64,000 bases of DNA from Lepidodermella squamata (Eukaryota > Animalia > Gastrotricha): contig JBLDXI010000032.1 in NCBI GenBank assembly GCA_047495785.1, positions 4,340,001 through 4,404,000 of the forward strand, read 5' to 3'. Positions 1 through 58,900 of the stretch are shown here, in pieces; position 1 is the first letter of the stretch; each line of letters opens with the position of its first letter. The position numbers and the translations under genes are program-made. The notes below the pieces were generated by a model, which saw only the letters and a program-made list of their open reading frames with translations, did no database searches and had not been told where the DNA came from.

Positions 1-3000
1 GTGTCGGCGTCGACATGCAGCCGAGACGGGATCACAACCCGTGGAACGTCATTTTTTTCGTATCTTTCCTGCTCATCGTCTGCTTTTTTGTAAGTTTCTT
101 GTCGGATTTAATCAACAGAATTGATAAAACAAATTTACTACAGATTCTGAACATGTTCGTCGGTGTGGTTGTTCACAACTTTCAAAAGGTTCAAGAACGC
201 GTTCGGGCCGAGTTCAAAGCTAAGAAACTGCTGCAGAAACAAGAAAAGCTGTTGAACCGGCTTCGGAAACGCTCTCAAATGAACCCTAACCGTCAAAGTA
301 AGTTCTGCGAAATTCCTTTGTCATGTCCTTTATTCGTGGTGTCGTTTTAGGACTTCTGGTTAAGCTTACTAAACGAAGCCCAATGACGCGAGTTACGCAG
401 ACCTCGCCGGCTCTTCAAACTCTCGACGCGACCTTGGCCAATCTTGAAGCCTCCCCAGCAATTACGCTATCCTCCTCGATTCCAGCCGTGAAAGTATCGG
501 TCGAGAACAAAGCGCCTGCCGAAGATCTGTCCTTCCTCGAGGAATATCCCTACTGGCGGCTTGTGACGTATCAAATCTTCACTCACAAGTACTTTGAGCT
601 TGTTCTCGCGGCAATAACAGCCCTAAACATCCTGGTTATGGCTATCGAATTCTACGAAATGCCTCCAGAGTTGCAAATGGCCGTCAAAATAATCGGCTAC
701 GTATTCACGGCTCTTCTCGTGCTCGAAGTCTTCGCCAAAGTTGCTGCTTTCGGCTTCTATCGCTACATCAGAGAACGCTGGAACCAGCTGGACGTCGCTA
801 TTGTTTTCCTATCATTCGGCGCCATCTATTTAGAAGACGCCTCATCGGTAGTCATTCCGGTCAATCCGACTCTGATTCGAGTAGCCCGCATTGTTCGAAT
901 CGCTCGTGTTTTCAAACTACTGAAAACCGCGTCCGGAATTCGCCGGCTTCTCGACACGGTTGGCCGCGCCCTGCCTCAAGTCGGCAACTTGACCTTGTTC
1001 TTCCTTCTTCTATTCTTCATCTACGCCTCGTTAGGCGTTGAAGTAACTAATTTATCTAATTATTTTCCGTTGATACTGGAATAATGTATTTTCAGCTGTT
1101 TGGCAAATTTGATGGCGAGTATGGCAAGTGTGAAGGCCTGTCGCGCCACGCCAACTTCCACAACTTCGGCATTGCCCTGTTGACGCTGTTCCGCATTTTC
1201 ACCGGTGACGACTGGAACGGCATCCTCAAGGACATGCTGCGGTTGTCGAACAATAAGGAAGAGTGCGCGCTGCTGATGAAATCGGCCGCCAATGCGACGC
1301 CCGATCGCGATTTCAACATCGAGTGCACCATCGCCGGCGTCCTCGCGCCCTTCTACTTTGTCTCGTTCGTGCTATTCGCCCAGTTCGTGCTGATCAACGT
1401 CGTCGTAGCTGTCCTCATGAATGAGCTTGAGGTAATAATGGTGTTCACTAGCTTTGAGAAGATTGATCTTGACTTGTTCTCTCTTGGCGCGTTCAATAGA
1501 GAATGGTAAAATGATTGCACCATTGATTTATTGACTCAACCATTTTTGAGCACTCTGACATTAACTGACGCTCTTCCCTTTACATCGCTGTATATTTAGA
1601 ACATACTTCAAAACGCCTGAATTGAACCCCGCCTTGAGGATTTATCCGCGAGAGTGGCAAACTTTTGCACGTTCGCATTTGATTTTTCCAATTTTTTCAG
1701 TGAAACATCATCCATGCTTTCAATATATATGTTTATCCGAGGCACATATCGTTATTCGTTATTTCCCAACAGCAATTACTAATCCATTATTTTTCATCAA
1801 TATTTATGCTTATATTGGCTAACAATTTGATGTGATTTCATTCCACAGGAGTCACATCGCCGCGATGCAATGGAAAAGCTGGAGAGACCTGAAAATGCCG
1901 ACGAGGAAAATATCGAGCAAAAAGCGGCCGTTATGGAGGAAATCGTTAAAACAGCTTGCCAAGACCTGGTAAATTAATTAAGATTATTTGCAATATTTTC
2001 TCGTTTAACCAATTAAACTGTGATGGTGTCCCTCGAAATCGCAGTTCGAGTGCAATTTTCAGTCTTGCGTAAAAAAGAAGAAAGTGGTCGTCAGACGGCT
2101 GTCAGTGAACATGAAACGAAGACGATTTAGCACAACTGGTAATTGGTCGAAAGTGTTGTTTCAATGGCGTGTCTCCTCGTATTAACTTGGAGTGGCAAAA
2201 AATAACATCCCCTGTGAAACCTCAAATTTAGTAAACATTTTAGCGGCGTATTTTTATCCTTTAGCCGCAGTTTACCCTGATGTAAATTTGGCGTGATATT
2301 AATTATTTAATTAACACCACTTTCATGAATTTTTAATTTCTATTTTCCAGGTCGATCAGCTTCAAGCTAAGCTGGGAACAACTCGCGATGAAGTGATAGG
2401 CATAGTTACAACGGAATATTTGATCCGCGAGCAGGAAAACGAACAAAGCTATACGCCGAACACTAACGTTGTCACTACGCCAGCCTCGGTGGAACAATCG
2501 CCTAGTCTGCTGGCTCTAACGGCGTCGCGGCCTGTTCTCGTCAGCCACAGTGACACGATGTGTACTGTTAGCGTGGAAGAGCGCAAAAAACGCCGCCAAT
2601 TCCGCGCGAGTCTCGACCAGCAAAGTCGATCCATCCAGCGCGAAGGCTCGCTGAAGGTGCGACGGCGGGAGAGCAGTTACATCTCTGTTGATGCTGACGC
2701 GCTGGAACAAATTTTCCACGATCTGGGCGACGCGTTGACGCGGAACAAAGAGCCACCTGGCGCGCAACGTTCCGGTTCACTGGTCATCGACGAGTTTCTG
2801 GAAATGCGACGGCGGGCTAGTCACCATAACTTTGCGGCGGTAACACCACCCTGCGGTGGTGCGGTGGTGCGTCGCCAGGCCAGTCAGCGGCCGCGAGTGA
2901 AACAGCAAATGGCTATCGACGAGGTGCTGGAGGCGAAACCGCGGCTGAGCGCGTCGTGCCACGACTTGGAACGCGCGACAGGCAAACCGGCGGCGACGAG

Positions 3001-3016: not shown

Positions 3017-5046
3017 TTGCATCATCAGTTTTCGTCGGAATTTTCGGAGGCCTTGTCTATCTATTAGAAGTTATATGTTGCTATTGCGCCGTGTTTTACG
3101 CGCCCGTCTAAAGTTGTACCGCAATGAAGATGATGGTTTGTAGTGATGATGCGATAACTTGATTGGAAACGCGATGCGCTTCCGCTGCTGCTGAGACAAA
3201 ACAAGAATGAGAGAGCGCAATGAGATGATTTATTATTGCTTCAATAAAATGAAAATAATAGCCATGAGAGACCAGCAGCAGGCGCCGTGTGGCGATGATG
3301 ATAATAAATAGCCGCTGCCGATTTAACGCCTTTTTCTTGTAAAACAACGCGAGTTTTTTTCAGTCTTACGTCGCCTATACACATATTTGGGAATAGAACA
3401 TGTTGTATATGCCGCGTTTTGGAACAAGTGTGCGTCCTGAATCATCCTATTATTCTTATCACTTGTATATATTTTTACAGCAGTTTTGCGGGTTATTTAG
3501 AAACGATGCTACGAACGAGAAGACAAGTGCGCCCATCAATATAACATCATATACAATTGCGTTTTTTTTTATCATCGCGTGAATATCGGCACCGATAATA
3601 GCCGTGTGCACATTGTGATGCCAAACACACGCGTTTATCTCCGGGCGCTATTTAAGGCCCAGCCAACTAGGGAGTGATTATTGCGGACGCAGAAAAACCG
3701 TTTCCACCCAACAAGTGTCAGCATGCTGTGTTGTAGGAAAAACGATCGATCGCGGACTTTAATCGGTGCCAAAAAGCTTACACGCAAACAGGGACAATCT
3801 CATTTTGGTGCCTGTGGATAGAATCTTCCCAGGGCCTGGCGCGGATTTTTACACACAGCAACGCCGCGTCACTTGCAGCATCGGTGTCCACTACTCCAGC
3901 CGCCTTAATTAGGCGCAACAATTCTTAACGACAATTATTTTTATTATCCGGGGCGCGCAGTACAAAACCCCGTCCGTCTTTCCCCAATAGACATTGGCAT
4001 AGATTTATTTAATGTATTTATCAAGGACACATTTCTGTGACCTAAGCACGGGGAATAACCGGCATTTTTTCTGGGTGAAAAAGTGCTATTTCCGTATACA
4101 ACCGGATCGCATCTTCAAAATTTTAGAGACGTGGCTTTCCTAACCAAGGTTTTAATCCTGAGACTGATGTTCATCAGAAATGAACTGTTAGCATCAAGCT
4201 CAGCGAAGTTCAAGAGACCTCGTTAGTCTAGGAAAAAGTTTCATAATTGCCCGAACGCTGTACTCATTTTGATAATCTGATCGCCCCCTAACCATTATCG
4301 GATGTAGGTACAGTGATCAATAATATATCCCCGATTTTTGCGCCGGAATAATTAACGAAATGGAACTTTGACCCAATAGGTATTGTCTGGCGATAATTTC
4401 CGATCCGTTCAAGTTACAAGTGGGTGCTTATAATAGTTGACGTCACCATTATATTAAGTTGTCACCTTAATTTTCTCGCATGCCTGTGCTCTATCTCGTA
4501 TTAGCGCATCTTTGCAGATAAGTCATGAAAAATAATAATATTCAATTTCAGCGCCTCATCACGAATTACAAAAAAACGATACTTATTACATGGGTACTCT
4601 CGCACGGGGCCCGATGGGACGCGCTTTTTCAATATAGCGCACGCTGCTGATGCATGCATGCCCGTGTTTTCAGCATCGCAGTAATTAAAATGTTAGTGTA
4701 AAAAAATGGTGCCGTTATCGCACAGTGCACGCTGTCGTACTATTTTGTATGCTTTTTTTACGACGGAAAATAGCGACCCATAATTTTACAAAAAAATTAT
4801 CCGACTATCGGCAAAACGTTTCCAACTCATTTGGCATCTTTATCGATTTCCATTTCGTTATACAATTTTTGCCTTTTGCCAACTTATCAACTAATACAGC
4901 CTTCGTCTGTCAAATTTCCAGTGGTTATTAAAATCTGAGAAAGCAAGACTCTAGTATGATATTGAGGAGTTGCGCCTCGCATCGCCTACACAACTGACCG
5001 GTCTGTGAACTGCGGGCATGAACTGCTCGACGCGAAAAGTCAGTTG

Positions 5047-8000
5047 ATGGCGTCGTTCAAATCCAGAGATGGCGCTCGTCGTCGCGCCATTCGAAGGATA
5101 GGCGTCGCCGAAGAAGACCACTTCTGCGAAGATCGCATCATCGAGCCGGTTCGAGTCAAACTCATCGCCCCACCAACGCCGCGACTCGCGCCACTGGCAA
5201 ATGAAGAAATTACCATCATAAACAACGTCAACTACCAAAGCATAGCCAACGATCTGCCGGCAGTTGCTAATGAAGAACCGGCGAGTACGTGTTACATCAG
5301 ACCTCAGGAAGAGGAGAAGCGATATGCCGATACGTCGTTCTATTACTGTACTCGGCAGAATTCTTTCAGAAGGCTGATGATAGCGCTGGTCGAGTCAAAG
5401 TGGTTTGGACGGTTTTCTGTGTTCCTGATTCTAGTCAATTGTGCCTCGCTTGGTTTCATGGACACATGCGATTTCAACTGCATAATCTACCGCTGCCAGG
5501 TCATGCAAACCATCGATCTATGCGTGTTTGTCTTCTTCACAATTGAAATGCTGATAAAAATGATCGCGATGGGAATAGTCGGGCCGCGGTCCTACCTGTC
5601 GGAGCCTTGGAATGTCTTCGACTTTGTCATCATTGTCGTCGGCTCGACCGAGTTCGTCTACGGCAAGGGTGCGACGGCGTTTTCGGCGATTCGAACCTTC
5701 CGCGTTCTGCGCCCACTGCGCGCCATAAATCGAATACCGAGTTTAAAAATTTTGGTCGAACTGCTGCTTGAAAGCTTGCCTATGCTCGGCAACGTGCTCA
5801 TGTTCACGTTTTTCATCTTTTTCGTCTTCGGAATCTGTGGCATTCAACTGTGGGCCGGTGTGCTGCGGCATCGCTGCTTTTTCCCTGATACGCCCGAGTT
5901 CAAGGCGCAAATCGAGGCGCAGAACTTGACCCACTTTCTTATGGAAATGCCTAATTTCTACCGACGGCCCGGTGGCGGCGACTTTGTGTGCAGTCCTCAG
6001 TTTGGCATGCTGCGTTGTGAAGACATTCCGTTATTCGAGTAAGTTCTATTCATTCGAATCGCATCTTTTTTAGCCGTAAATTTCTCACCCAGGCAAGAAG
6101 GGTCGATTTGCGACCAGATTTTCCACGATGATGAAGCGATAATTTGCGGCAACCTGGTACCGAATTACACCGACTGCCGGCCGGGCGCGCCGAACCCGTC
6201 TCGCGAGACGGTCAGCTTCGACAACATTGGCGCCGCGTGGATCGCCATCTTTCAAGTAATCAACCTCGAATCGTGGACTGAAGTGATGTACTTCGTCCAG
6301 GATGCTTACTCTTTCTGGGTGTGGATCTACTTTGTCATTCTCATTGTGGTAAGTTTGATTTTCAGAGAATTACTCCAAAAAATTGATTCACTTTCTTAGA
6401 TTGGCTCATACTTTGCTCTAAACTTGTGCCTCGTCGTTATTGCCAATCACTTTCAAGAAGCTAAAAGCCGAACGTCGTCGCGCCTCGGCGGCACTCGTCT
6501 CTCGATAGATAGCACCTCAATCTACCTCCAAGTGCTAGACCTCATAGCTTACGGCATTCGGCAGTGCTTCGACTTTTTAAGCTGTGAAATCCCGCCAGTC
6601 ATACGCCAGCAGCAGCAACAAGCAGCTACGGCTGACGGCCGATCCACCGGCGGCGGTGGGGGCGAAGACAATCCGAGACGTGAAACTAGCTCAGAGCAAC
6701 TCGACCTCATCATGAGAGTCAGTGCTTATGGCATTTGTAAGTATTTTGCATAAAATCAATAATTTTTTTATTTACTTTATTTATCAACAGCTTTATCTGC
6801 TGCTCCTGTTGCTAACGGAGATGTAAATCGTCAGAAGAATAAACGTCCCAGTGTTTTTGTCAGTAAGTTATAAATAGCCACACAGTAAAGCTAAAGGATA
6901 ATTTTTGTGTTTTTTTTCAATCAGCTTTCATTCAACGTGAAGTTTCAGGCAGCCGGAAGTTTTTGCGCGATTTGTTCGAGCACGACAGCGTTGCGATGAT
7001 CATCATGGGCGTCATTGTGCTGAATACGCTCATCATGGGAACAGAACACCACCAACAGCCGGAATCGCTGACTGTCGCCATCGAAAGCCTCAACGTCGCC
7101 TTCACGATATTCTTCGCCGTTGAACTCATGCTGAAAATATACGCTTATGGCTTTCAGGTGTACATTCGCGACGGCTTCAACATGCTCGATTTGATTGTGG
7201 TGGTTGTCAAGTAATTACTTTTTCATTTTTAATTCGGTACAATCTAAGCTCTCTCACTAATTTTATTCAGCATTTTAATCAGGTATCAACTGGAAACAGA
7301 TTTAAAATCATTTCGAAAGACGCCGAAGAGAATGGGGTTGACTGATTATAATTTTCTTTAGGCTTCAATTTTCTTTCAATTTTATTGAGGGTTGTAGAAA
7401 TTTAGCATGTGTACTTCTTCTGCCTAGACAGAATTTTATTTTGCGCATCTGGAAATTTTCGGGATTATGTGAATTAATTTCGGATCTGTGGTTAAATTTT
7501 ACTCTAATCTAACATTTTAGTCTTGCTGAACTGGTGCAAGGCTCCGGAACCGGGTTCTTTGTGCTGCGAGCCTTCCGGTTAGTTCGCCTCGTCAAAATCA
7601 TTCGCTTCTTGCCCGGCCTACAGCGCCAGTTGCTCATCATGATGCGAACCGTCGACAACGTCGCCTCGTTCTTCTTACTCGTCAGTCTTTTCCTGTTCGT
7701 ATTCGCCATCATGGGCATGTCGCTGTTCGGCTGCCAGTACTGCCCGTCGCTGAACCGGTACATGCGGCCGGAATTCAAAGGCGTCGACGTGCCTGTCGGC
7801 GAGTTCGAACTCAACGACACGCTGATATTCGACCTGAGCCGTACTTCGAATGTCACGCTCGAGACGCCGAATGAAGGCCGCGACCACAGCCACGAGATCG
7901 ACCTGATATCATACTTCATATGCCCGCGAACCAACTTCGACACTCTTGCTTCGTCTTTATTCACCGTTCTACAGGTTTAAATCGATTTCCTCGAAATTTA

Positions 8001-11000
8001 ATGTATAAAAATGATCTAATTTCTCCAGGTTTTTACTCAAGACTCTTGGACCTCGGTGCTTAAAGATGGCATGACGGTCACATCGGACTGGGCTGGTCTT
8101 TATTTCGTAGCACTAGTGTCGATTGGCAACTACGTCCTCCTTAACTTGCTTGTCGCCATCTTGGTCGAAGGGTTCAGTAGCAGTGAAGAGGTTTGTAGAA
8201 AATGAAGTTTTTCGAATGACCTTTTAAAATTGAAATTAATGAAAACAGGACAGCTTAGCTAATAGCGAGGTCAGCCAGGATCATTTTTTTGCATCTGCAT
8301 TGCAAAAGGACAAGATAAAAACAGCGCCGATGGCATCTGTTGAGGTATGATCTTCGCCATTCTTATCTCATTGTAGCAAATAAGCTTCCGTTGCAGAGTT
8401 TATCGGACAGTTCAGAGACACCTCGCGGGTTGCCGATGCATACAATTTTAACAACACCCATCAGCAACTCGCCCATGTCGTGGCGGTCGACGTTGCGAGC
8501 CGCCTCCGCCAACGCCTGCTGCGGTCTCGGCCGCGTGATAGGCCAGCGGCGGCAGTATTCGTTCTTCGTCCTGTCGCCCGAGAACATGTTCCGCCGCGGC
8601 CTCGACTGCTTCGTGTCCAGCCGCTACTTCGACAACGTCATCTTGTTCTTCATCGTCTACAACTGCATTGTGATAACCATGGAGCGGCCGTCAATCAAAA
8701 AGGACAGTCTCGAGCGGAAGCTTATCGATCTATCTAATTCTGCCATTAATTTGATCTTCCTCATCGAAGCTATTCTTAAAATCATTGCCAAAGGTTTCAT
8801 TATCGGCGAAGGTGCCTACCTCAAAAACGGCTGGAATATTCTCGACTTCATCCTAGTAAATTGCTCAACTGTCTACACGCTGTTCGATCTGTTTTTCTCG
8901 CGGGTGGAGGAGGCTAAGATACTAGAAATTTTACGAGTTTTACGGCTACTACGAGCTTTAAGACCACTTCGAGTCGTCAACCGAGCTCCAGGGTTGAAAA
9001 TAGTCGTCGAAACACTGCTATTATCTGTCAAGCCGATTGGAAACATCATTGTGATAACATCGGCATTTTTCCTAATTTTCGCAATTTTGGGTGTTCAAAT
9101 GTTTCGCGGCTGTTTCTACCGGTGCGTTGTCGCCGGGTCGAAGTACGTGTCGAACCGGCAAAGAGCGGCGGCGCATCACGGCGGGCATCAGGCGTCTGAG
9201 GCTGAAATGCTGACATTTGAAACACTGTCTGGCGTGAAGAATCGGACGGATTGCGATGAGCTCGGTTCGACGTTTGAGTGGGAGAACGAGAGCTACAATT
9301 TCGACAACCTGCTGCAGGCCCTAATGACGCTGTTCGTTTTCGCCACCTTCGACGGCTGGGTCGAAATAACTCGCGCTGGTATCGACTGCGTTGGCACCGA
9401 TCTTCAGCCTATTCACGACTACAACCCGTGGCGCATTCTGTACTTCATTTCATTCCTGCTCATCGTGTGCTTCTTTGTAAGCCTGGGCATATCTAAGATT
9501 TTTGCCGATGAATTATCATTATTTTACAGGTTGTCAACATGTTTGTTGGTGTGGTTGTGACCAATTTCGAAAAAGTCCACAAGCGGGTGTTGGCCGAAAA
9601 GGAAGCCCAGCGACGGCGTGCTAAACGCATGCAGATACCAGCCCAGAAAAAATTCAGCATACCCAAAAGTAAGTCGCCTCTTCATGTTTGCTTAATCCTG
9701 ATCTAATCCTGATGATTCGATTTTTCAAGAAAAAATGTTCAAGTGCATGAATCGAAGTGGTTCGTCGTCGTCGCGGCCGATGTCGATGTCGAACGAAAAT
9801 TCGAATGTTCGAGCACCACCAGCCAGTCGCGGGGAGCCTCCAGCTCGGAGACAAGGCATATCAATGTCACAGACCCAGGCCGAGCTACGTAAGATGATAT
9901 GAAGCTACTTTCATCCTTACATTTAGCGTTTTACTGTGCATTGATGTGATAATGACAACATTTTTGGCGATTGTTTTAGGTCTATTACGGCAGCGATTCC
10001 GAAGCAGTAAATACTTTATTAGAAAGCTTTTCCCATTGCGTTTCTTCTGAGCTCTGGTAGACGGGAGCTAGTCTTGATAACTTTAGAACTAGAAATTGCA
10101 CGTTAAAACTATTATTTCACCCCTTTGACATTTCTGGAACGAGGACCTTGGGGCATCATCGTGAAATATTTCTGTATCATAACTTGGAAAAATTTACTAC
10201 GAAGATAGAGCGAAATATTCATTAATTTGAACGCTCTTTATTTCAACTTTTAGTAACCTTGAGTTCTCTATTTTCGTAGTCGTAGTATAATTTGCTTATA
10301 TTAGTGAGACCTGCTCAATCTGGATGTGGGCTTAATTTTGATTAATCCCCGCATTATTCCTGTTTGCATAAATTATTCCTCCTTAATGACCTATTTTTTG
10401 CAGTGCGAAATACGGTTCGACGCAACGCTCTATTGCATCGGTACCTGCAGTGGCGGCTGCGCATGTATCGCATATTCACACACCAATATTTCGAACTCGT
10501 ACTCGTCGCAATCACCACCGTAAATGTGCTAATCATGGCCGTCGAGTACTACCAAATGCCGAAAGAACTGCTGTTCGCCATCAAAGCCGCTAGTTACGCC
10601 TTCACAGTGCTACTCGGCCTCGAGCTCTGCATGAAAATGATAGCCATGGGCGTGAAGCGGTGCCTGCGCGACCCGTGGACCAAGCTCGACATATTCATCC
10701 TAGCCGCGTCATGTGCCGAGGTCCTCATGGAAGACTCCTACACGCGTTTCATGCCAATCAACCCGACTATTTTTCGACTTCTCCGCCTTGTGAGAATAGC
10801 GCGAGTGTTTCGGCTTTTAAAAACTGCGAAAGGAGTACGCCGGTTGCTGGATACCGTCAGCCAAGCCCTGCCTAAAGTCGCTCATCTCTCGCTCGTGTTT
10901 TTCCTCCTGTTTTTCATCTACGCCTCGCTGGGCGTTGAGCTATTCGGAAAATTTTCATGCCCATACGCAAAATGTGGCGGGCTGTCGCGTCACGCGAGTT

Positions 11001-12355
11001 TCGAACATTTCGGCATTGCCCTGCTAACCCTGTTCCGCGTCTTCACCGGTGACAAGTGGAACGGCATTCTGAAGGACATGCTGCACGTGTCGAGCGATGT
11101 CGACTACTGCTTGAAGCTGCTCGACGTTCAGGAGCAACTAGATGGCACGGTCGAGTGCCGAACAGCCGGCTACACGGCCCCATTCTTCTTCGTGTCATTC
11201 GTGCTAACCTCTCGATTCGTACTCATCAACGTCGTCATTGCCGTACTCATGAGCCAGTTGCAGCGGTCACAGCGTGAAGAAGCCGACGAGGCGAATGCCG
11301 ACCGCGTTAATATAACGCGAATTTTCCACACCAAGAAGGCGCCGCCTAATTCGGTGAGTTCAAATTCATCGCACAACGCAGATTTTTTTTAATTTATTTC
11401 AATGCATTGAAAGTGAATTAAATCAGTATTTTTCTGGAGATTTTGGAAAATTACACCTTTAAAATTACAGAACGTTAGGGAACCTATTCGTAAGAATGAG
11501 GTTGCTACTCAGGTTTCAATCGGACCATCGTTTCGATGGGTAAGTGTAACGGAATAACAAAAAGCACTCGACGACAGCTTCCTTGCACGGAAAATATTTC
11601 AAAAAATGGCACTTTTTCGCTTACAACACAATGCAAAAAATAATTTCACAATAGCATGGCTCTTCTTTCTAAAATCTCGAGCGCACATTGAAATTCGCAT
11701 GTGGGTGTTAATTTGAGTTCATTCTGTTTTGCAGGTTCAAAACAGCGAAGAAGATCTTGTGGTGGAGATGAACACGCTGTTTCACTACGGCAGTCGTTAC
11801 GGCACGCGCGATACCGGTCTGAGCGCCGCCCAGCACCACCAACGCCTCGCCTCTGTCGCTAGCTACCCGACGCGGCCGGTCAGTCGGCAGCCGTCCAGCC
11901 GTCGCCCGAGCCACTTCAGTGTCAGCAGTCGCGAACTCGGCGGTTCGATACGGCTGATCGACGCCAGCGCGCCGTCTCTCAGCAGCCTGTCTGCCCGCGC
12001 TCTTCAGTCGCACCGGCCGTCGTTCAAAGATCATCGGCGTTTGCCGCGAAACGCCTCAACAAGGTCGTCGAACAGAAGCAGTAAGCGGCGAGTTTCGCTT
12101 CGGATGAAAGCGTCCAGCCTGCACGGTGCCATCGACGACCCTCGCATCCGGCTGTGGACCGATGCGGCTCTGCGACATCAGCACTCGCTGCGTGGCGACA
12201 CCGCGAGCTCGGCATCGACTGTCGGCTTGGAAGACTGCAGTGACGTCATCGACAACACGGTGACGTACTACGAACCGCCGCCGATAACTGTTCACCAGGA
12301 AGAGGAAGATGATCTACCCAGCAGCAATGTCGAGTCATTTTGTATAGATGTCTGA
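5047..12355 (+). CDS. Cav3: T-type (Cav3-like) channel, paralog B, complete four-domain multi-exon gene
   Basis: DI S4 [29 protein letters not shown], pore INLESW (E 6268); NLCLVVIA plus gating-brake-like helix; DII pore FTQDSW (D 8041); DIII pore ATFDGW (D 9351); DIV pore FTGDKW (D 11051). First in-frame ATG is 5047, and the start is less certain than the body. Confidence 0.93.
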
Positions 12356-40084: not shown

Positions 40085-43000
40085 CTATTTCGACACCGTT
40101 TCACTGACGTAGGAAATCCATGAAAAACTATGCGTTATCATTTTGCCCAAGCGCCGGCGATTAGGATCCGGGGCGAAATTCCGGCGCCTGGCCTCAGCAT
40201 ATCGACGCAGAAGCTCGACAATCTCACCGCTTGTTGTTCGACTCAACGGTCCAGCTGGGCTCGCGAAGCCAGCGAAAGATGTCTCCATTTCTTCATCTGT
40301 CTCCGCTTGCTCAACTCTGATTTTGACTCGGCTGGTTACTGAAGAAAACACCGACTCGTTTCCGCCCTTATTATCCTCGGCTATAACTTGTGACAACGTC
40401 TCGTGCGCATTATCAACTGCTCTTTGCATAAACGCCACACTCAAAGCCATTGGACACGTGAGATTCGCGGCAGAACGCGAGCAAAACATCCTTTCGATTC
40501 GGCCGCGCCATGCCTGCCGTCCCTCCTCGCCATCGAACATGTTGCTGAGAACATAGCAGGATAGGCTACTGGCGCACTGCCTTGAGAGCTTGTTCTGGCT
40601 CCGCAGACTGTTCAGCGACGGAAAACGCTTGCTGTCGTTGTAGCTTTGCAGGCGCATTTCTTCGAGTACGTATTCACAAGACAGAACTCGCATCAATTGA
40701 TTCAAGGGTAGTTCTAGTAACGGTGAATCTTCACCGATCATCGGCCTCTGAAAGATAGAAAATATTGAAACCGCATTTAAAGAATGAGACAAAATGCTAA
40801 CAATTCTAGTCTCGAACTCCTCAGTTATTGTTTTTTCAATAGTTTCGCATCGTTCTGTTGTCATTCGCGAAATTTTTGTGGCCACTTCACTGTTTCTCTG
40901 ATCTTTCGAATTTTCCGGCGACAGTTTCGGCGTGCCACTCGGTAACACGTTTTCGACCTCCTTCTCGCTGGAATCTTGTAAATTTCGCATCAGCACAGCA
41001 ACGACGATGTTGATGAGAAAGAACTGCGTGAGCAATACGAATGAAATGAAGTAGACAGGGGAGATGAAGTAGACGATTCCACAGGGTATCGCCCGGTTCG
41101 AATGTGCGATGAAGGCTTCGCAAATCTCTGAATTACCGGCGATCGCCAGCATATCCTTAAGGATAGCGTTCCAGTTATCGCCTGTGAAGATGCGAAACAG
41201 GGTAAGCATTGTCAGGCCGAAGTTGTCGAAACCGGCATGGCGGGATAGGCCTTCACATGTTGTGCCCTCGGGGCAGACGAAAGTTCCGTAAAATTGAACA
41301 CCAAGCGCCGCATACACGAAAAACAGCAGCAGGAACAGAATTGAGAGGTACATGACGTGAGGTATCGCTTTGGCAATGGTGTCGATCAAATGCCGAATAC
41401 CCTCGGCAGATTTCAGGAGTTTGAACGCCCTAGCAATGCGAAATACTCTTGCTGCGCGAATAAGAGTGGGGTTAATTGGAATATAAGCCTCTAGGACGAT
41501 GCCGAAAACTGAAAGCAGAAAGATTCCGAGGTCGATTTGGTTCCAGCGCTCGGAGATGTAGCGCACGAAACCGAAAGCAACGATTTTCATCAAAGCTTCC
41601 AGTGCCATAAGTGTCATGAAAAAGTAGCTGCAGTAGCCGATTAGCACGTTGAAAATTTGAGGCATTTGGTAATACTCAACTGCCATTATAAGGAGGTTGA
41701 CAAGCGTGAGGCCGATGATGACGATTTCGAAAATGTCGTTCGTCACAAATTTGTAGAGAAATATTCGCCAAGATGGGTAATGCATCCAATATTCGTCCGC
41801 CTGGGGCGAATCTTCGTCTTCATCCGAGAACAGCCTGTGCAGTTCTTTCGGCGGGCCATCAGCCGGATGGCCGGGGACTCCTTGTGCGGCATGGTGGGCT
41901 GGGATTGCCAGCGATTTCGCGGCTATTCGAGCGAGGACGCTTGACGTTTGCAAGCTGCACATGCGCTGTTTCACCTGCTTTTCGATGTACTTTTGCACTC
42001 GCTCAAAGTTGTTTACAACAACGCCGACGAACATGTTTAGAGCCTAACATTTGAACTCATTTTAGCTTTGTTAATGCGGCGCGGTATGAATGTGAACTTA
42101 CGAAGAAACAAACAATCAGCAAAAAAGAGATGAAGTAAAAATAGGCAAACGGGCTGTGACCAGGAACAGGCTGAAAAAAATAAAGATCATCGCTACGAAA
42201 TTATTGCAATTTTCCTCATCCATTACTAACTTGTAAATCTGAACCAGCACACTCAACACCGTTGAGAGTCACAGCAGTCCAGCCGTCGAGGGTAGAAAAG
42301 ACGAATAGAGTCATGAAAGCTTGCGGTAGACTGTTGAAGTTGTACGGCTCGATTTCCCACTCGAAACCGAGACTCTCGCACTGATTTCGGTCTTGAACAG
42401 ACTCGAACATGCGTATGACCGCGCCGGTTTTCGCCAGAATTGCGGCGTTTCCATCGCTGCCATTTACTTCGATGACTTGGGGGAATACGCATCGAGCAAA
42501 GCATCCGCTATACAGCTGCACGCCGAGAATTGAGAAGACTCCGAAAAATACAAAGCAGATGAACACTGCATCGAAATATTATTCGATTAAATGAAGTAAA
42601 ATTTAGGAAAAAATTCACCAATATTGCCGATTGGTTTTAGTGAAAGCATCAGCGTTTCCAGGACTATTTGCAAGCCTTGCGCTCGACTAATAACACGAAC
42701 AGGGCGTAGAGCTTTCACGAGACAGAAAACTCTCAGAACTGTTCGGAAAATCTCGAAAGCCCCGAAAGTATCATCGCCATCATCGCCCATGTGCATCGGG
42801 ACATGTTCAAGGACGACGTCGAGTAACCCAGCAACAACTAGAAGGAAATCAATCTTGCCCCACATATTACTTAGAACCGCCTTGTGACCATTCGAGAAGC
42901 CGAATGCAATACTTCTAGCCAAGATTTCCAACGTAAAAACAGCGGTGAAAAAGTGGTTAGCCGTATTCATCGTGTGGCGTTCCCAGGAGTCCTGGCCCAT

Positions 43001-46000
43001 CAGCGGCCGCTCCAAAACTATAGGAACACAACTAGCCAAAATGACGAAGAGGAAGAACGTCTCGTAATTCTTTGAGGCGAGCAGCTTTTTTAGTTTTCGG
43101 CGCAGACGGCTGTTACGATCGAACAAGCAAAGGGCGTTATCCGAACGGTAACGGCGTCGAATTTTCTCGGCAAATGTTGTTGGCTTCGGAATCCTGGCAG
43201 TGTGTTTCAGCAATTGGGGTAATAACTGTTTGAAACTTAAAATTAAAATCTAAATAATTCTAATAACGGGGCACATACCTCAGCAGCTCTTTCCTCGGCA
43301 AGCAGTTGTAGCACATCGTTCGACCCGAAAACAGCCAGCTCCAATTCAGGCCCATCGTCCTTAAAAAAAGAAGAAATGAACTTGAATTCGGAGAAAAATG
43401 CGAGTAACTTACATCCATTCCACAGAACCCCTCGACCAAAATTGCAATCAGCAGGTTGAAGATGATGTAGTTTCCGATGGCTACAACAGCCACGAAATAA
43501 ACCCCGGAAAAATTGCTGGTGAAGTGCATCCCGTCACGCATGATTGGCGACCAGCTGTCCTGGGTAAATATCTGCAAAAAGCCAAAACTCGTCGGCAGAA
43601 GGCAATCAAATCAAGAAAAACCTGTAGAACAGTGAACAGTGACTGGAATAATGAATCGAAGTTGATTTGCGAGCACTTCATGTGTCCCGGAAATGCCTCA
43701 GTAGCATTCGATTCACTCGTGGTATTTGAGGATAAGGACTGAAATTCAAAGTATTGATCGAGACTTAGCACCTGCATCATACAAGGCAGTGGCTCCAGCG
43801 AAGCGTTTCGACTCGCCTGTGTGTCGTTGTCTTTGTGCTGCTCCATTTGGCAGAATTTACATCCGAAAAGAGACATCCCGAATAACGAAGAAATAAACAG
43901 GAAAAAACTGAGAAGCATGAAAAATGTTGCGACGTTATCAACAGTTCGAATCATAGCCATGAGCTGTTTCTTTAAATCATCCGGCATAAAATGGATGATT
44001 TTCACGAGCCGAACAAGTCGGAAAAGCCTCAAGACAGAGAACCCGGACGGACCTGACCCTGAAGCAAGTAGCTCAGCGACACTTTCAAGTAGAAATGACG
44101 ATGCTATCACAGTTGAACAAACTTGAAATTTATATTACTTTATGCTTATGATGACAGTATCGATTATGTTGAAGCTGTTTGAGATGAATACGATCGGGCC
44201 GTAGGCGTAGAATTTGACGAGCAACTCGACAACAAAAACGAAGGTGAAAAGTATATTTACGACCTCGTGAATCAGCGTTACAACGTGCGACTAAATTTCG
44301 GAATCGAAAATTGATCAATTCAAAACTTAAAAAAATTCATACCTGTCCGTAATGCTCTGTCGCCATTACACAGGCATTTAGGACTATCATGATGCCGGTG
44401 ATGATGAGGGTAACGTTGTGCCCTAAAATATGGCGGAGAAACGCCCGGCTTCGCTGAACTGCCGCCCCGATGTGAACACAAAAGGCACACCGCTTCTTTT
44501 GTCTAGGAGGATACTCGCCCGGCTGTAGTTCGGGCGCTATTTTCTTCGGGAAAACTCGATGCCACGCGTGGTTTATCCAATGAATGAGCCATTTAATCAT
44601 TTGAGCATACAGGCCGTCATCCTTCTCATCGCCGGCCTCTGCCTCGGCTTCGGCGAGGATCGAATCTACTTCGCTCGGTTCTTTGGCAACAAGCTGTTCT
44701 TCCGCTTTCTGCAAAATAAATCTATATAACTGGACTATCAAATTTTGAATTTATGCTCACGAGTAGCTCGGTTTCGCGAGCTTTTGTTTTCGTAAATTGG
44801 GTAGCGACGACAACGAGGCAAAGGTTCACAGTGAGGTATGCCCCGATCTAAATATCAATGATCAAGGAATGACTCAAAGAAACTATTCGTTTACCATGAC
44901 GAGAGCAATGAAATAAATCCACACCCAGAAGGAATAGGCATCCTGTATCAAGTACATGATGTCTGTCCATGATTCGAGCGAGATGACTTGGAAGATTGCC
45001 AGCCAGGCGAAGCCAATGTTGTCAAAATTCAGCGTGCCTCTCAGCGGGTTCGGGCCATCTTGCCGACACTCGGTGTAATTTCTAACCCAACTACGGCAAG
45101 CTTCCAGCCGTTCGCGATCGTACGCAAATCTCTCCAAACACATTGATTTTTTGCGTCTGGAAAATGAAAATCAGGCAAATTGATATTGATTGAAAACGAA
45201 GCTTGTATTACTCTTCAAGCGCAATGTCGCTACAGCGAAGTAAGCCGAACGAATCCGTACAAATAAATTCGACTTCATCGGGCGGTTCATAGTAAGCTGG
45301 CATGAATGGTGGAGGCTATATTATGATCAAAAAAACATCCAACATCCGAGTGAAACAAATGCTGTTAGTTACCGTTGCATCTTTTGGAAAGAAACAGCGC
45401 TGCCTCAATATTCCAGCCCATAATTGGACAGCAACAATACCAAATACGGAAAACGTGAAGAAGAACAATATCAGCACTGTCAAGTTTGGATGTACTTCTT
45501 TTAAAAAATCGTTATAATTTTAGAAAACGCCGTTACCGTTGCCCATCATAGGCAAAATGTCCAGCAGGAGCGATATGAGTAATCGAAGGCTTTTAATTCT
45601 GTTAATTGCTCGCAACGGCCTCAAAACTCGAATTGCTCTGATGGCTGTGAAATTAACCCCACTGTTCGCGAAGATATACTCGGATGCACTAAATCCAACA
45701 GATGTTAAGTACATCTCAATTGCTAGGAAATTGACCCTAATACCTGATAATCACAATGAAGAAGTCGAAGCAGTTCCATGAATCCCTGAGGTAGGCATTT
45801 TCGCCGGCCCAGAAGCCGAGCGCGAGAATTTTGAGGCACATTTCGAAGAAGAAGAACATAAAAATGAAGTGTTCAACCTGCGACAGCACAGCGCAGGTCG
45901 GTTTAAGGCACGCGACATCGCACGGATCGGTCATGCCCAGCGCTATGCAGTTGACGAGAATGGCGACGAGGCTGACGCGTTTGAAGGCCTTGCTCGCGAT

Positions 46001-52929: not shown

Positions 52930-55900
52930 ATGGCGACGAGATCGCCGAATAGTGAGGTGTTGCAGGCCAAGTCATTCCTTTGCCTAAGCCTGGACAATCC
53001 ATTCCGGCGAGCTGCTATTAGACTCGTCTCCTCAAGATAAGTTCTTGCTATGTTGCCATCATCATTTATCCCATATCATTTTATATACATGGTTCGAGCG
53101 ATTTTCAATATTTATGATCGTAGTCAATTCAATGGCTCTTGGCATGGTCGACCCATGTGACGTCAAATGCCGCAAGCCAGTTTGCGCCACACTCCAGGTT
53201 GTTGAAGACGTAATATCAGCCTTTTTCGCGGTCGAAATGTTGTTAAAAATGCTAGCGATGGGCATAACTGGAAAGGGCGCCTATTTAGACGAGTCGTGGA
53301 ACCGCTTCGACTGCTTCATCGTCATAATTGGCACTTCCGAGTACATATTCGCCGACCAAGAGATCAACTTGTCAGCTATCAGAGCCATTCGAGTTCTGCG
53401 ACCACTTCGGGCGATCAACAGAATTTCGAGCCTCCGTCTTTTGGTCACTCTGCTGCTTGACATTCTTCCCATGCTAGGCAATGGTAAGGTCTCAACGTTA
53501 CACCTTGAAATCTTTGAAATTGCCCTTTTCAGTGATGATTTTCTGCTTCTTCATTTTCTTCGTATTCGGCATTGTTGCAGTTCAACTTTGGGCCGGGATG
53601 CTTAGGCATCGGTGTTTTTTCCCTAATGATCTGTTCACATCTAACTCAACCGCCCAACCGCCGCCTTTCATGCCTCAGTACTACAGCCAGCCACATCGCG
53701 AATTCATTTGCTCACCCGCGGGCGGGGAGACTCACTGCGGGCAGATACCGCAATACGAAAAGCACAGTTCGATGTGCGCCGACATGTTCCCGGCTTCTAC
53801 CGAACCGACCAAACTAATGCTGTGCCGCCGCTGGGTTGCGAACTACACCGAGTGCCGGCCTGATGGGCCTAATCCAGCCCGCGGTACCATTAACTTCGAC
53901 AACATTGGATCGGCGTGGATCGCTATTTTTCAGGTCATATCGCTCGAATCTTGGACGGAGGTCATGTACATGATGATGGTGAAGCATATTCGCAAAGTTC
54001 TTGAACATTTTCTAAATCGAGTTATGCAACACAGGATTCGTTTTCGTTCTGGGTTTGGATCTTTTTTATCCTGCTTGTCTTGGTAATTCTGGAGTATTGA
54101 TTTTTCTATTCGTTTAAAATTTGAAAATGTGTAGATTGGGTCCTATCTAGCGGTTAATTTGTGCCTCGTGGTCATTGCAACTCAATTTTCCGAGACGAAA
54201 TTGCGCGAGGCTGAAAGGATGGTAAGTTAGGCGAGGACATTTTTTTTAATGCATTGCTCACGCTTTCTGCTCTTAGAAAAAAGAGCGACTGGCTGAAATC
54301 GATTCTGCAAGCTCATCCTCATCAATGTCGTCGATTATGTCGACTGACGACGGTCTGTACGCCCAGATAATCGACCTGATATTCCACTATATTCGCTATG
54401 TAAAACGCAAGCTGTGCCGAGTGAAATCGAAAAAGCGTCACCTTAGTCTTCTCGTAATGTCCGTTAATGTTCCTGGCAACCGGCGTCTCACTCGCCAGGG
54501 CTCTTCGGTTGGCGGCGGGGCTTGCCCGGGTTGCCGACATCGTCTGCGTCTGATGCGACATGGCCGGCTAAGCAAAGCTGAGAGCAAAGAGCCGTGTCTG
54601 CTATGCGGTCGGTCGCCGAATTTCGAGCAGCTATTGTCGAAATTTCCGTACGGAGAAAAGCGATACTGCAAAAACAACTGCCTTAACGGTTTTGTCTCCT
54701 GTATCCAACGATCTCGAACTTGGCTAAGGGACCTACTCGAGCATGATGCGTGTGTTGCCGCTGTCATGGGTACGATTGTTGTCAATGCCGTAGTGATGGC
54801 GCTCGAACACCATAACCAACCAGAAGCGCTCACTTCTTTCATCGAGGTCATGAATATGATCTTTACTACAATTTTCGTCACCGAGCTCTGCATCAAGCTG
54901 TTTGCATACGGGTTCGAAGCTTTCATTCGAGAGGCCTTCAACGTCTTGGATGCTGTTGTTATCGCGATTAAGTACCTAATTAAATTTTTTATTTTTCTTG
55001 TTTAATCTCGATGTGTTTGAAGTATTGCGGAGCTGTTTTTCGACCAGGACGGTTCAAGCTCTGGCTTTGCGGTGTTGAGGCTGTTCAGGCTTGTGAGGAT
55101 CGTCAAAATCATTCGATTTCTACCGGCTCTGCAAAAGCAACTAATGGTTATGGTGGCTGTTGTCGATCACGTGGCCACTTTCTTCCTTCTCCTCGGATTT
55201 TTCTTATTTATTTCGTCACTGTTGGGCATGTCGCTTTTCGGCTGCAAATTCTGCGAGAAGACCACACGAGGAAACGGCGGAAATATTCTTTTGAACGGTA
55301 CAATGTCCACCTGTGCTCTTCAGGTAAACTCATATCCAGGAACAACAGCAAACAAACTATAAAATAATTCAGGTTATCGACATCGATCAAGTCGAGGCAC
55401 TGGAGCGTGGCTTAGCGGCCATGCGTTCAGCTGCTGACGATGAAGAGGAAGTCTACTACGGCTGCTCTATAGCCAACTTCGATTCACCCTTCCAAGCCAT
55501 TTTCACTGTTCTACAGGTGTTCACTCAAGACGATTGGGGTGCCGTAATGCAGGATGGCATGCATTACACGTCACCGTGGGCTGGTGTTTATTTCGTTTCT
55601 TTGGTAACCATCGGCAACTACATCATTTTCAACCTTCTGGTCGCCATTCTTGTCGAAGGTTTCAGCAGCAAAAGCGTAAGAAATTTTCACCCTTAACTAT
55701 AGCTACTACTATAATTCGGCTTTGCAGCAAGACGATTTGCTCGATTGCGAGAACAAAGCTTTGGAAATTATAAAAAAGAAGACTGAAACAAACCTCCAGT
55801 TAGATCCGGAGGAGCTCGAGAATGGCGCTGTCGATGGGGCAAAAGCAGAGAGCAATTTTGCCCGTGCAGCTCGTTGTTGTCGCTGCATGGGCAGCGTTTT

Positions 55901-58900
55901 CGTTCGTTGTTGGGCAGCTGAGCTTTCAGATCGGGCGTTGTTCATCTTTCCAAGAGATGCCTTCCCACGGCGGCAACTTCGTCGCATGTTCGCGTCCGAG
56001 CTCTGCGATAAAATCTTCTTCTTCGTCATTATTGGCAGCTGTTTGGTTATCGTAATCGAACGGCCTGGAATTGACAAAGACGGCTTGGAGCGTTTATTGA
56101 TAACCTATGCCAATTACGCTTTCACGGTGATTTTCTTCCTGGAAGCTTTTACTAAAATCATCGCGTATGGCTTCTGCCTCGGTCGCAAGACATACCTGCG
56201 CAATGGCTGGAATGCGCTGGATCTTTTCTTGCTCACCATTGCGATTGTCGATATCACGCTCGAATTTGATGATTCGGACAAGAAGCTCCTACAGGCGCTC
56301 CGAGTTCTTCGGCTCCTTCGCGCGCTACGTCCTCTACGCATAATCAGCCGATCGCCAGGCTTGCAAATCGTCCTCCAAACATTGATGATCTCAATCAAGC
56401 CCATTGGGAATATTAGTAAGTTTGATAAAGCGACCCATAAAGATTCATTTCTCTTCTGATTTAGTACTCATTTGCTGCTTTTTCTTCTTGATATTCGCGA
56501 TATTGGGTGTACAGCTGTTCAGCGGGTGTTTCGCGCGTTGCTTAGCGCCTCGATCTGCTGTTATCCCGAACGCATCAGCAATCGTATCAGCTTCAGGTGC
56601 CGAAACCTACTCGGAGTGGGCCACTGAAGCTTTGGCTAATGTTAAAACGCGTAACGACTGCACAGCAGCCGGCTTTGACTGGGAAACTGACAGCTATAAC
56701 TTCAACTCTCTGCCTGAGGTGGGTTCTGTCTGAAATGCCAATGAAAAGCTTATTAATCCTCCATTCGTATGCGTCAGGCTCTGATGGCTCTTTTTGTATT
56801 CGCAACTCTTGACGGGTGGACTGACATCACCCGCAGCGGCGTCGACTGCGTGTCGCCCGACCAGCAGCCCATTCGAGATTACAATATGTGGGCCTACGGC
56901 TACTTTATTTCCTTCCTGCTCATCGTCTGCTTCTTCGTATGATGCAACAACTTTGTTTCGAGAGCTTATATTTTTTGAGCTTTTGAAAGGCACTGAACAT
57001 GTTTGTTGGCGTGGTTGTTAATAATTTCCAGAATGTCCAACGTCAGGTGAAACAGCACATCGAGAAACAAGCGACCGGCGAAGCTAGAGCATCAGATGCG
57101 TTTGCTGCAGCCTTAGCCAAGCAGTATACTCGGGCAAACTCAACAGGTATCGCAGTTTTGCGAAATCCAAATTAAAAAAATCGCACTTTCGAGATGTTTT
57201 TTTGCCTAATCTTCTGTTCATTCCTGTATAGTATCGTACGCATCTGGACGACGTGTGACTGTCGGTGAGAGGAGCTATTATTAGAGATTGCCTCAGATCT
57301 TAGTATAATCTCTCTATTAGTGACCCAATTTTGGTTCGATTTCCCCGTTTGGCGACGACGCCTGTGTTTGCTTGTAATGCACAAGTACTTTGAGTATACC
57401 GTCATTGGAGCGACTGTTCTAAACGTTATCATGATGGTAATTACTATCTGTCCTACCTCCTCACTTTCACTTCAATTGAACCTTTTAAGACGTGCGAGTA
57501 TTACATGATGCCACCGTGGCTTGTAAGCACCATTACCATAGCTTCTTACGTGTTTCTCGGCCTACTCGCTATCGAAGTCAGCCTTAAGTTGACAGCATTC
57601 GGACCAGCTCGCTATTTTTCCGATCGTTGGAATCAAAGTGATGTTGCCATAGTACTTCTCTCAATCTGTGGAATCATATTGGAAGAACTGCCTAAGGAGT
57701 CTGTTCCCGTCAATCCAACTGTCGTTACCTTTCCACGCGTTTTCCGAATCGTTCGAATCCTCAAGCTGTTAAAATCAGCTTCGGGCGTTAGAAAGCTCCT
57801 GGAAACATTAAGCGAAGCAATCCCTCAAGTCATCAATCTCTCTCTGCTGTTCTTCCTACTCTTTTTCATCTATGCTTCCCTCGGCGTGGAACTCTACGGC
57901 AATTTCGACTGCCATTACGAAGTTTGCGAAGGCCTGTCGAGACATGCGAACTTCAAGAACTTCGGCATGGCGCTTCTAACGCTATTCCGCATCTTCACCG
58001 GCGATAACTGGAACGGCATTCTGAAGGACATTCTCTGGATGTCGAACGACGAACAAGAGTGCACTACCTCGGGCGATAAGCATGGCCACGATCATGAGGC
58101 CGTTGGAGGCATTGTATGCTAACAAGTTTCTTTCAGCATTTGCTCTTTGACTCTCTTCATTTCGTAGGCTTGCGGAGTGATACACTCTGTTGCGCCAGTG
58201 TATTTTGTCTCTTTCGTGTTACTCGCCCAATTCGTGCTGATCAACGTTGTAGTTGCAGGTAATAATAGGCCTTATTATGATGCCATAACTTCCACATATT
58301 AAGCTTTGTTCATTTCAATTTGAAAACCCATGGCTTCATCTAAATTTTTGCGTAATACTTTAGTTCTGATGAGCCAACTTGAAGACGCTGCGAAGCGTAT
58401 CGAGAATGAAAATGCACAGATGGAGGAGGCGAAGAGACTAAGCAAGCGTAGTTCGAGGTCAAAATTCCTAGACGAAGACACAATCCTAAGTCGGAGCACG
58501 TCTCGCTATTCGGTATGGTTTCAACTTTAAAATTTCCTTGTTCGATTATTCACAAAAATCCTCAGGCGACCAATTACAGTGGTATTGCAATGCACACATT
58601 GAACGGGCATAATTCGACAGATACTATGGCGAGATACCGCGAGCAGGAGACGAGCTTGACCGATGACGATGGACCCGTAATGACACCCGTATCGACGCGC
58701 CGACTGGCCGGCATGATGAGCCCGCGCATGCTAGCCTCGTTCGATGAAGATGAAGACGAAGACGAAGAGTTTTTGAGGCCATTGCCCGAAATAATCAACG
58801 AAGACCACCTCTGGCTGACCCGCGTAATGGAGCCTGAAGCTGCTAGCGTAGCTTCTTTTGAGTACATCCTGCAACACCAGGTAACATCCGCGTTTTTATC

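Follow-up and report, generated by a model that had tools for sequence, protein, structure and literature searches.

A conserved lysine just above the filter ring in one of five clustered T-type (Cav3) channel genes

Five T-type (Cav3) calcium channel genes lie in the 64-kb stretch of DNA analysed here in full (the window). One of them, paralog B, has a lysine in domain IV directly above the acidic ring of the selectivity filter, and a serine at the equivalent place in domain II, which in Cav3 channels is usually occupied by an aspartate. The filter of B is a real, conserved and rare variant inside a known channel family, and a functional meaning for it is plausible. We believe that B most likely encodes a calcium-poor, monovalent-conducting T-type channel, because published mutants in which the domain II Asp is changed to Asn make Cav3 channels sodium-permeable; we put the probability of this reading at about 0.5.

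Results

A cluster of Cav3 genes

The five genes, designated A to E, have introns of about 53 nt with GT-AG ends. Their positions are collected in Table 1 together with those of the other features discussed below; the span given for B is approximate and has no complete exon model behind it. The gap of about 27 kb between B and C holds unrelated genes. More than one Cav3 gene has been described in non-vertebrates only for cnidarians and flatworms (Spafford 2023, PMC10120453), to which the cluster adds an invertebrate with at least five.

Table 1. Positions in the window of the Cav3 genes and of the features discussed in the text. The +1 residue is the one that follows the filter residue.
Feature	Position	Strand	Detail
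Paralog A	1 to ~3000	+	end of domain III, domain IV and C-terminus inside the window
A, domain IV P-loop FTGDDW	1198..1215	+	GAC GAC at 1207-1212; +1 Asp
Paralog B	5005..12355 (approximate)	+	all four domains; open segments with short introns between them
B, domain I P-loop INLESW	6259..6276	+	filter Glu; +1 Ser
B, domain II S5-P turret	7726..7947	+	three Cys; 66 residues between 'FGC' of S5 and 'NFD' of the pore helix; same layout in L001
B, intron of 54 nt	7975..8028	+	GT-AG; shortly before the filter codons of domain II; lacking in the ortholog L001
B, domain II P-loop FTQDSW	8032..8049	+	filter Asp; +1 Ser (TCT, 8044-8046) at the usual 'beacon' Asp position
B, domain III P-loop ATFDGW	9342..9359	+	Phe before filter Asp
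B, intron of 53 nt	9477..9529	+	GT-AG; removed in one contig of run X2
B, Lys at start of S5 (AAA)	10874..10876	+	domain IV; replaces a 91%-conserved Gln
B, domain IV P-loop FTGDKW	11042..11059	+	TTC ACC GGT GAC AAG TGG; filter Asp GAC 11051-11053; +1 Lys AAG 11054-11056
B, Arg in S6 (CGA)	11213..11215	+	domain IV; opposite Gln1848 of human Cav3.2 in the alignment
Paralog C	~46100-40088	-
C, domain II P-loop FTQDSW	43551..43568	-	+1 Ser (AGC)
C, domain IV P-loop FTGDNW	41171..41188	-
Paralog D	~52990-59300	+
D, domain II P-loop FTQDDW	55520..55537	+
D, domain IV P-loop FTGDNW	57994..58011	+
Paralog E	~59900 to the end of the window	+	domain IV beyond the window
E, domain II P-loop FTQDDW	62653..62670	+

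Paralog B as a channel gene

B encodes four homologous six-helix domains, all of which were covered in a tblastn search with a full-length Cav3 protein, and the S4 arginine ladders of domains I to IV can be read in the translations. Among solved structures, domain IV of B matched human Cav3.2, Cav3.1 and Cav3.3 best, with E-values of 1e-113 to 1e-109, whereas a Cav1 structure reached only 1e-61. A domain IV tree placed B inside the Cav3 clade, which was split from the outgroup with a support of 99, and the conserved segments of the gene showed neither stops nor frameshifts. Cav3 channels are distinguished by a gating-brake helix-loop-helix in the I-II linker and by the absence of AID and IQ motifs; in B this linker starts, after S6 of domain I, with a stretch of 14 residues (letters not shown).

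One observation bears on transcription. A contig from X2, a run from 2015 whose type is uncertain and whose sequence is near-identical, joins position 9478 to position 9533 with one letter between them, which corresponds to exact excision of the 53-nt intron plus one synonymous change. This single contig, with a depth of about 7, is the sole joint favouring spliced RNA in a run where some intron sequence is covered as well and fold-back chimeras are numerous, and it is weakly consistent with a spliced B mRNA. The best explanation of these findings is that B is a functional T-type (Cav3) gene under selection (see below), with slight evidence for transcription.

Charges at the outer end of the filter

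We read the P-loops directly from the translations. The +1 residue of domain IV, which is Asn in the Cav3 channels described so far and is kept as such in C and D, is Lys in B and Asp in A; the 'beacon' Asp at +1 of domain II is kept in D and E and replaced by Ser in B and C. All of these assignments had been proposed in an earlier note on this DNA, and they stand. HMMER alignment pairs the Lys of B with the Asn of TGDNW in human Cav3.1, Cav3.2 and Cav3.3.

Below this row, the filter ring itself is E-D-D-D in B, C and D, and E-D-D over domains I to III of E, so that the cluster lacks the E-E-D-D ring by which Cav3 channels are usually recognized. The residue before the filter Asp of domain III is Phe or Leu in the cluster. 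In B, the row just above the ring reads, from domain I to domain IV, Ser/Ser/Gly/Lys, and the net charge of ring and row taken together goes from -5 in the canonical arrangement to -3. No new acidic residue that might compensate was found in pore loops II to IV of B, nor by eye in domain I. These readings support B as the paralog whose outer filter is least acidic, and agree with the earlier proposal that B has lost one acid (Ser for Asp) and gained one base (Lys for Asn).

Rarity of the variant

We then asked how often such residues occur elsewhere. The 249 proteins retrieved, pooled from an exhaustive representative search and a word-index protein search, contained 140 TGDxW motifs, in which the variable residue was Asn in 129, Asp in three, Gly in three, Ala in two, and His, Ser and Lys in one each. 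The single TGDKW belongs to P0002, the ortholog of B described below. In the representative set, 28 of 29 Cav3 proteins had TQEDW in domain II, and in 43 of 47 other Cav3 loops a Lys or Arg preceded the filter Asp of domain III.

In the literature the Cav3 ring is 'always EEDD' and has been called invariant (Spafford 2023, PMC10120453), and a single cnidarian (anthozoan) gene is the one reported exception among Cav3 channels to the domain II +1 Asp (PMC10120453, PMC9694082), which bears out the claim that this residue is highly conserved. On their predicted proteins, B and C are new exceptions to the 'always' present domain II Asp, A and B depart from the described domain IV Asn, and the E-D-D-D ring of the cluster is an exception to 'always EEDD'.

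The lysine is real and conserved

The earlier note had allowed that the unusual codons might be sequencing errors and had called for a check in sequencing data. In the Logan contigs of run X1, which cover 96% of words and contain two haplotypes at about half depth each, a unitig spanning 11030-11500 showed zero differences from the window at a depth of 78. Its first 30 letters are shared with an alternative-haplotype unitig that ends at 11059, and because of this overlap both haplotypes carry AAG. The Lys codon is confirmed to that extent; X1 may be the source sample, and we do not count it as independent support for this reason.

Evidence from another species came from the exhaustive representative search, which returned P0002, a protein of 283 residues that is 72% identical to domain IV of B and reads FRVFTGDKW at the filter. 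It is encoded on L001, a 5.8-kb metagenome scaffold from a different species (GC 38%, compared with 45% in the window), which also encodes FTQDSW, ATFDGW and a domain II turret with three Cys. At both key codons B and L001 differ synonymously (AAG and AAA for the Lys, TCT and TCA for the Ser). Over 775 aligned codons the two genes share about 71% of amino acids and 64% of nucleotides, with dN at 0.19-0.23 and dS saturated, which indicates strong purifying selection since a deep split. Further GDKW orthologs were not found in JGI metagenome contigs, where the sole locus recovered, L005, is a distant protist-like channel with TGDAW; the word-index protein search returned neither a protein identical to those of the window nor any named close relative.

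In the domain IV tree B pairs with P0002 (GDKW) with a support of 100, A with P0025 (GDDW), C with P0056 and D with P0106. Because each paralog pairs with its own metagenome ortholog, the duplications, the Asp of A and the Lys of B all predate the species split; the contig that carries the ortholog of A, L002, contains domain IV only. The tree neighbours are sequences of a tunicate, Hydra, a scorpion and amphioxus, a placement that looks like a long-branch effect.

We have rejected the readings of B as an error or a pseudogene, as both haplotypes and the L001 ortholog contradict them. That the Lys arose in sequencing or assembly, or that B is a decaying copy, is scarcely credible when an independent assembly from another species keeps the Lys under a synonymous codon, the two haplotypes agree on it, dN is far below dS and the conserved segments are free of stops and frameshifts. 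Nothing was found in favour of such a reading, apart from the consideration that the source sample and the main DNA run may be one and the same.

The domain II Asp was lost twice

In a tree of domains II and III, the pair formed by B and L001 is sister to a group in which E is joined by C and, within that, by D with its relative L004: (B, L001) and (E, (C, (D, L004))), with a support of 99/99. Forcing B, L001 and C into a single clade cost 26.5 log-likelihood units (AU p = 0.004), a test that is weakened by the fact that the group was named after the tree had been seen. The Ser codons also fall into different families, TCT or TCA in B and L001 and AGC in C, between which no single synonymous step leads. 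Given the different codons, the nesting of C with D and E, and the AU result, B and C must have lost the domain II Asp independently.

Other changes in the B lineage

To describe the remaining changes in domain IV, we scanned for residues that B and its ortholog share, that are absent from 64 other Cav3 sequences and that fall at sites at least 85% conserved. The B lineage has seven such sites. Those away from the filter and S6 include a Thr for Asn in S3, a Glu for Gly after S3 and, around the beginning of S5, an Ala for Gly and a Val for Leu; the list also holds the N to K change at filter +1. A Lys replaces Gln at the start of S5 (Table 1), and in S6 an Arg stands where 67 of 68 motif matches have Gln, the only Arg being that of P0002. 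The equivalent residue of human Cav3.2, Gln1848, lines the central cavity and hydrogen-bonds antagonists (PMC11143251). Judged by these replacements, the B lineage has gained three positive charges in the pore module of domain IV. The same scan gave three sites for A (among them N to D at filter +1), seven for C, none of them charged, and one for D. Domains II and III of B have three lineage-specific sites, none in a pore loop.

We also counted cysteines around the pore. The S6-side loop of domain IV has only two Cys in A, B, C, D and L001. Two disulfide pairs in this loop are considered obligatory for sodium-permeable Cav3 channels (Spafford 2023, PMC10120453).

Discussion

Ion preference of paralog B

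According to current theory (Spafford 2023, PMC10120453), the choice between calcium and sodium in one- and four-domain channels is set by the residue immediately above the ring. The outer calcium site of CavAb, site 1, is built from the +1 side chains, and the single +1 Asp that is kept in domain II of animal Cav channels joins directly in calcium binding (PMC7583514). The Asp-to-Asn mutant D975N of Cav3.2 gave a sodium-dependent current of 6.5-fold, compared with 1.3 for the wild type, and D1098N of the snail channel LCav3-12b gave 8.6-fold compared with 2.3; a single turret lysine at the same level takes LCav3 from 2.3-fold to 15.6-fold, a switch that is reversed by K1067A (PMC9694082).

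The row above the ring of canonical Cav3 channels can be written as Gly/Asp/Gly/Asn. Immediately over the constriction, the Asp of domain II and the Asn of domain IV are placed opposite one another (PMC10120453), at the outer calcium site. B has lost the acid that would hold calcium at the mouth of the pore, and opposite its place would stand a fixed positive charge; we infer from homology that the Lys side chain reaches the ion path. Replacement of Asp by Ser, combined with a Lys opposite, would be expected to abolish the outer calcium site. High-affinity calcium binding and block by calcium would then be lost, leaving a low-voltage-activated current carried mainly by sodium or other monovalent ions. 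The S6 Arg of domain IV would line the cavity below the filter and may lower conductance. These expectations are drawn by analogy, and results obtained on E-E-D-D channels may not transfer to B because its background is different (an E-D-D-D ring, Ser at +1 of domain I and no Lys in domain III). Against a calcium-poor, monovalent-conducting B stand the one Cys pair that all paralogs have in the S6-side loop of domain IV, compared with the two of Spafford, and the possibility that a pair of basic residues in the ion path hinders conduction instead of retuning it.

Other readings of the filter have to be weighed against this one. The Lys might have a role in structure or gating and stay out of the ion path, in which case any shift in selectivity would come from loss of the domain II Asp only and B would resemble C. 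Ser alone is viable, as C has it without the Lys; mutations in the filter of Cav3.1 are known to shift gating (10.1101/626069); and four of the seven changes in the B lineage fall in S3, the S3-S4 region and S5, away from the pore lining. We nevertheless consider a purely structural Lys rather unlikely, given that the +1 position lines the outer site by homology and that pore loops II to IV have gained no acidic partner for it. Moreover, the lineage-defining N to D change of A falls at the very same position, which points to selection on charge there. It is also conceivable, if unlikely, that B conducts poorly or not at all, and serves as a voltage sensor, as a small leak-like conductance or as a modulator of other channels. 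In NALCN, where a Cav-like pore also contains a basic residue in the filter, the open probability is very low (PMC10120453), and B has two conserved basic residues in the putative ion path, the Lys above the filter and the Arg in the cavity. The conservation of its S4 charge ladders and S6 segments, the retention of four acidic residues in the ring and the purifying selection across its pore loops are what we would expect of a channel that still conducts.

Alternatively, the lineage background, including the E-D-D-D ring and other acids of the vestibule, might compensate and leave B selective for calcium. An engineered E-D-D-D form of Cav3.1 is indeed still a calcium channel, with small gating shifts only (10.1101/626069), and the single disulfide in the S6-side loop of domain IV is the configuration of calcium-selective channels (Spafford 2023, PMC10120453). 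Set against this, neutralization of the domain II Asp is by itself enough to render Cav3 of snail and of human permeable to sodium, and in B a positive charge comes in addition, so we regard full compensation as improbable. We are equally doubtful of the most far-reaching possibility, in which B would be a truly sodium-selective low-voltage-activated channel, its +1 Lys acting, from a novel position, like the lysine of DEKA, as part of a lineage-wide move to make sodium channels from calcium channels.

A natural series of filters

Whichever reading holds, the cluster offers a natural test set in one genetic background, with +1 residues in domains II and IV of Asp and Asn in D, Ser and Asn in C, and Ser and Lys in B, and with Asp in domain IV of A. 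These states are all ancient and conserved, and the Asp was lost on two occasions. The graded series that the earlier note proposed, starting from an extra-acidic A, would depend on domain II of A, which falls beyond the window. The set as a whole could show whether charge above the ring tunes ion preference in steps, and B could show whether a Lys at +1 can substitute for one inside the ring.

Comparison with known channels

B resembles canonical Cav3 channels, such as human Cav3.1 to Cav3.3 and snail LCav3-12b, in its four domains, its best sequence matches and its placement in the Cav3 clade, as well as in the filter Asp of domains III and IV, the TGDxW and TQxxW frames and the one disulfide of the domain IV S6-side loop. 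It differs from them at the filter and in the cavity. The canonical ring is E-E-D-D and that of the cluster E-D-D-D; the domain II +1 residue is Asp in canonical channels and Ser in B and C; and the domain IV +1 residue is canonically Asn, in contrast to Lys in B and Asp in A. Canonical channels also have Lys or Arg before the filter Asp of domain III, where the cluster has Phe or Leu, and Gln in S6 of domain IV, where B has Arg.

The anthozoan Cav3 gene (Class Ib of Spafford 2023) is like B and C in being a separate gene, not a splice form, whose sister genes keep the domain II Asp. Class Ib is characterized by high measured sodium permeability and by a neutral residue other than glycine at this position, the latter shared by B and C with their Ser; its S6-side loop in domain IV has two disulfide pairs, that of A, B, C, D and L001 only one Cys pair. 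The anthozoan residue is Asn, whereas here it is Ser and arose twice, in B and in C; the ring of the cluster, E-D-D-D, sets it apart further, and a Lys at +1 of domain IV, as in B, is unreported for the anthozoan gene.

NavAb, NaChBac and the engineered CavAb are homotetramers with four identical loops, unlike B with its four different domains. In NavAb and NaChBac the loop is TLESW and its +1 Ser confers sodium selectivity, and in the engineered CavAb (TLDDW) a +1 Asp creates the outer calcium site. The NLESW and TQDSW loops of B read like the sodium form. We know of no channel of the NavAb, NaChBac or CavAb type with Lys at +1.

A pore Lys in a four-domain channel recalls Nav1 (DEKA) and NALCN (EEKE or EKEE), where it is associated with sodium conduction, and the earlier note had drawn this analogy. 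It holds in that B too has a Lys in the pore. In Nav1 and NALCN, however, the Lys takes the place of one of the ring residues, that of domain II or III, whereas the ring of B is fully acidic and its Lys belongs to domain IV; because this Lys sits one residue above the ring, the analogy is an indirect one.

The form of snail LCav3 that contains exon 12a (LCav3-12a), an exon also found in nematodes, is like B in that a single Lys just above the ring cuts the negative charge there, and in its domain II turret with three Cys. The three Cys to which the earlier note had drawn attention are present in B. The turret is nevertheless not of the 12a type, because snail exon 12a encodes 39 residues in all and the turret of B alone has 66 between FGC and NFD; no alternative exon of the 12a/12b kind was seen at B. 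The mechanism would also differ, in that the turret Lys of LCav3-12a neutralizes, by a salt bridge, a domain II +1 Asp that is still present, whereas the Lys of B lies in the filter strand of domain IV and its Asp partner is absent. With these differences allowed for, and judging by position and charge, we regard the turret lysine of LCav3-12a as a closer precedent for B than DEKA or EEKE.

Residues at and beside the selectivity filter

The 'beacon' aspartate of domain II, which follows the ring residue of the pore loop (the filter+1 position), was lost independently, twice, in the Cav3 paralogs B and C. The serine found there is encoded by TCT in B versus AGC in C, and C groups with D and E in the tree (AU test, p = 0.004).

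Phe or Leu precedes the domain III filter Asp in every window paralog at the four loops tabulated; Lys or Arg occupies this site in 43 of the 47 other Cav3 loops of the representative set. It corresponds to Lys1462 in Cav3.1 and Lys1503 in Cav3.2, and is a drug-site residue. P0052, a metagenome protein that is sister to the window Cav3 cluster in the domain IV tree, likewise carries Phe at this domain III position (LSFDGW). Its domain IV filter+1 residue is His (TGDHW), indicating that the filter+1 site is repeatedly variable across that region of the Cav3 tree.

At one site in the domain IV S6 segment, an Arg (codon CGA in B) is exclusive to B and P0002, its ortholog from another species; 67 of 68 Cav3 motif matches have Gln there. 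The aligned residue in human Cav3.2 is Gln1848, which binds antagonists in the central cavity (PMC11143251).

Genomic context and sequencing runs

The Cav3 genes are non-contiguous, with other genes lying between B and C (within 13800-39300).

Positions of the features in the window
Feature	Paralog	Position	Strand
Domain I loop, (S/N)LESW	B	6259-6276	
Domain I loop, (S/N)LESW	C	44967-44984	-
Domain I loop, (S/N)LESW	D	53937-53954	
End of domain II turret, CPRTNFD	B	7900-7947	+
Domain II loop, Asp lost	B	8032-8049	+
Domain II loop, Asp lost	C	43551-43568	-
Domain III loop		9342-9359	
Domain III loop		42279-42296	-
Domain III loop		56802-56819	
Domain III loop		63896-63913	
Domain IV S6 Arg	B	11213-11215	+
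Cys-loop receptor fragment		14460-15223	
Cys-loop receptor fragment		37181-38530	
Amino-acid transporter		21375-22196	-
Long intron-free ORF, ANF_receptor ligand-binding domain		27648-30155	+
Long intron-free ORF, ANF_receptor ligand-binding domain		34190-36667	-
ENPP-type phosphodiesterase		32835-33902	

Over 7500-11500, the best DNA run (X1) carries two haplotypes, each at about half depth, whose differences are dense in places (e.g. 10220-10440 and 10789-11029), also in the part of the domain IV exon that precedes the filter. Over the same interval, contigs of X2, a 2015 run, are rich in fold-back ('opposite strands') joints with a spacing of about 100-110 nt; these look like an amplification artefact, and an RNA or DNA label for that run is therefore unsafe.

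Comparison with known channels

The turret Arg of B lies 20 residues upstream of the domain II filter Asp, close to the switch lysine K1067 of snail LCav3 exon 12a (-19); at -19 itself, both D and E carry Ala, as in the alternative exon 12b. Human Cav3.1 likewise has RK at the position of the turret Arg, so that equating this Arg with K1067 by position is uncertain. The domain III TFDGW of B resembles the Cav1 form. Gly is the domain I filter+1 residue of E and of most Cav3 channels (SLEGW/TLEGW); the Ser of B, C and D is like that of bacterial NavAb and NaChBac (TLESW).
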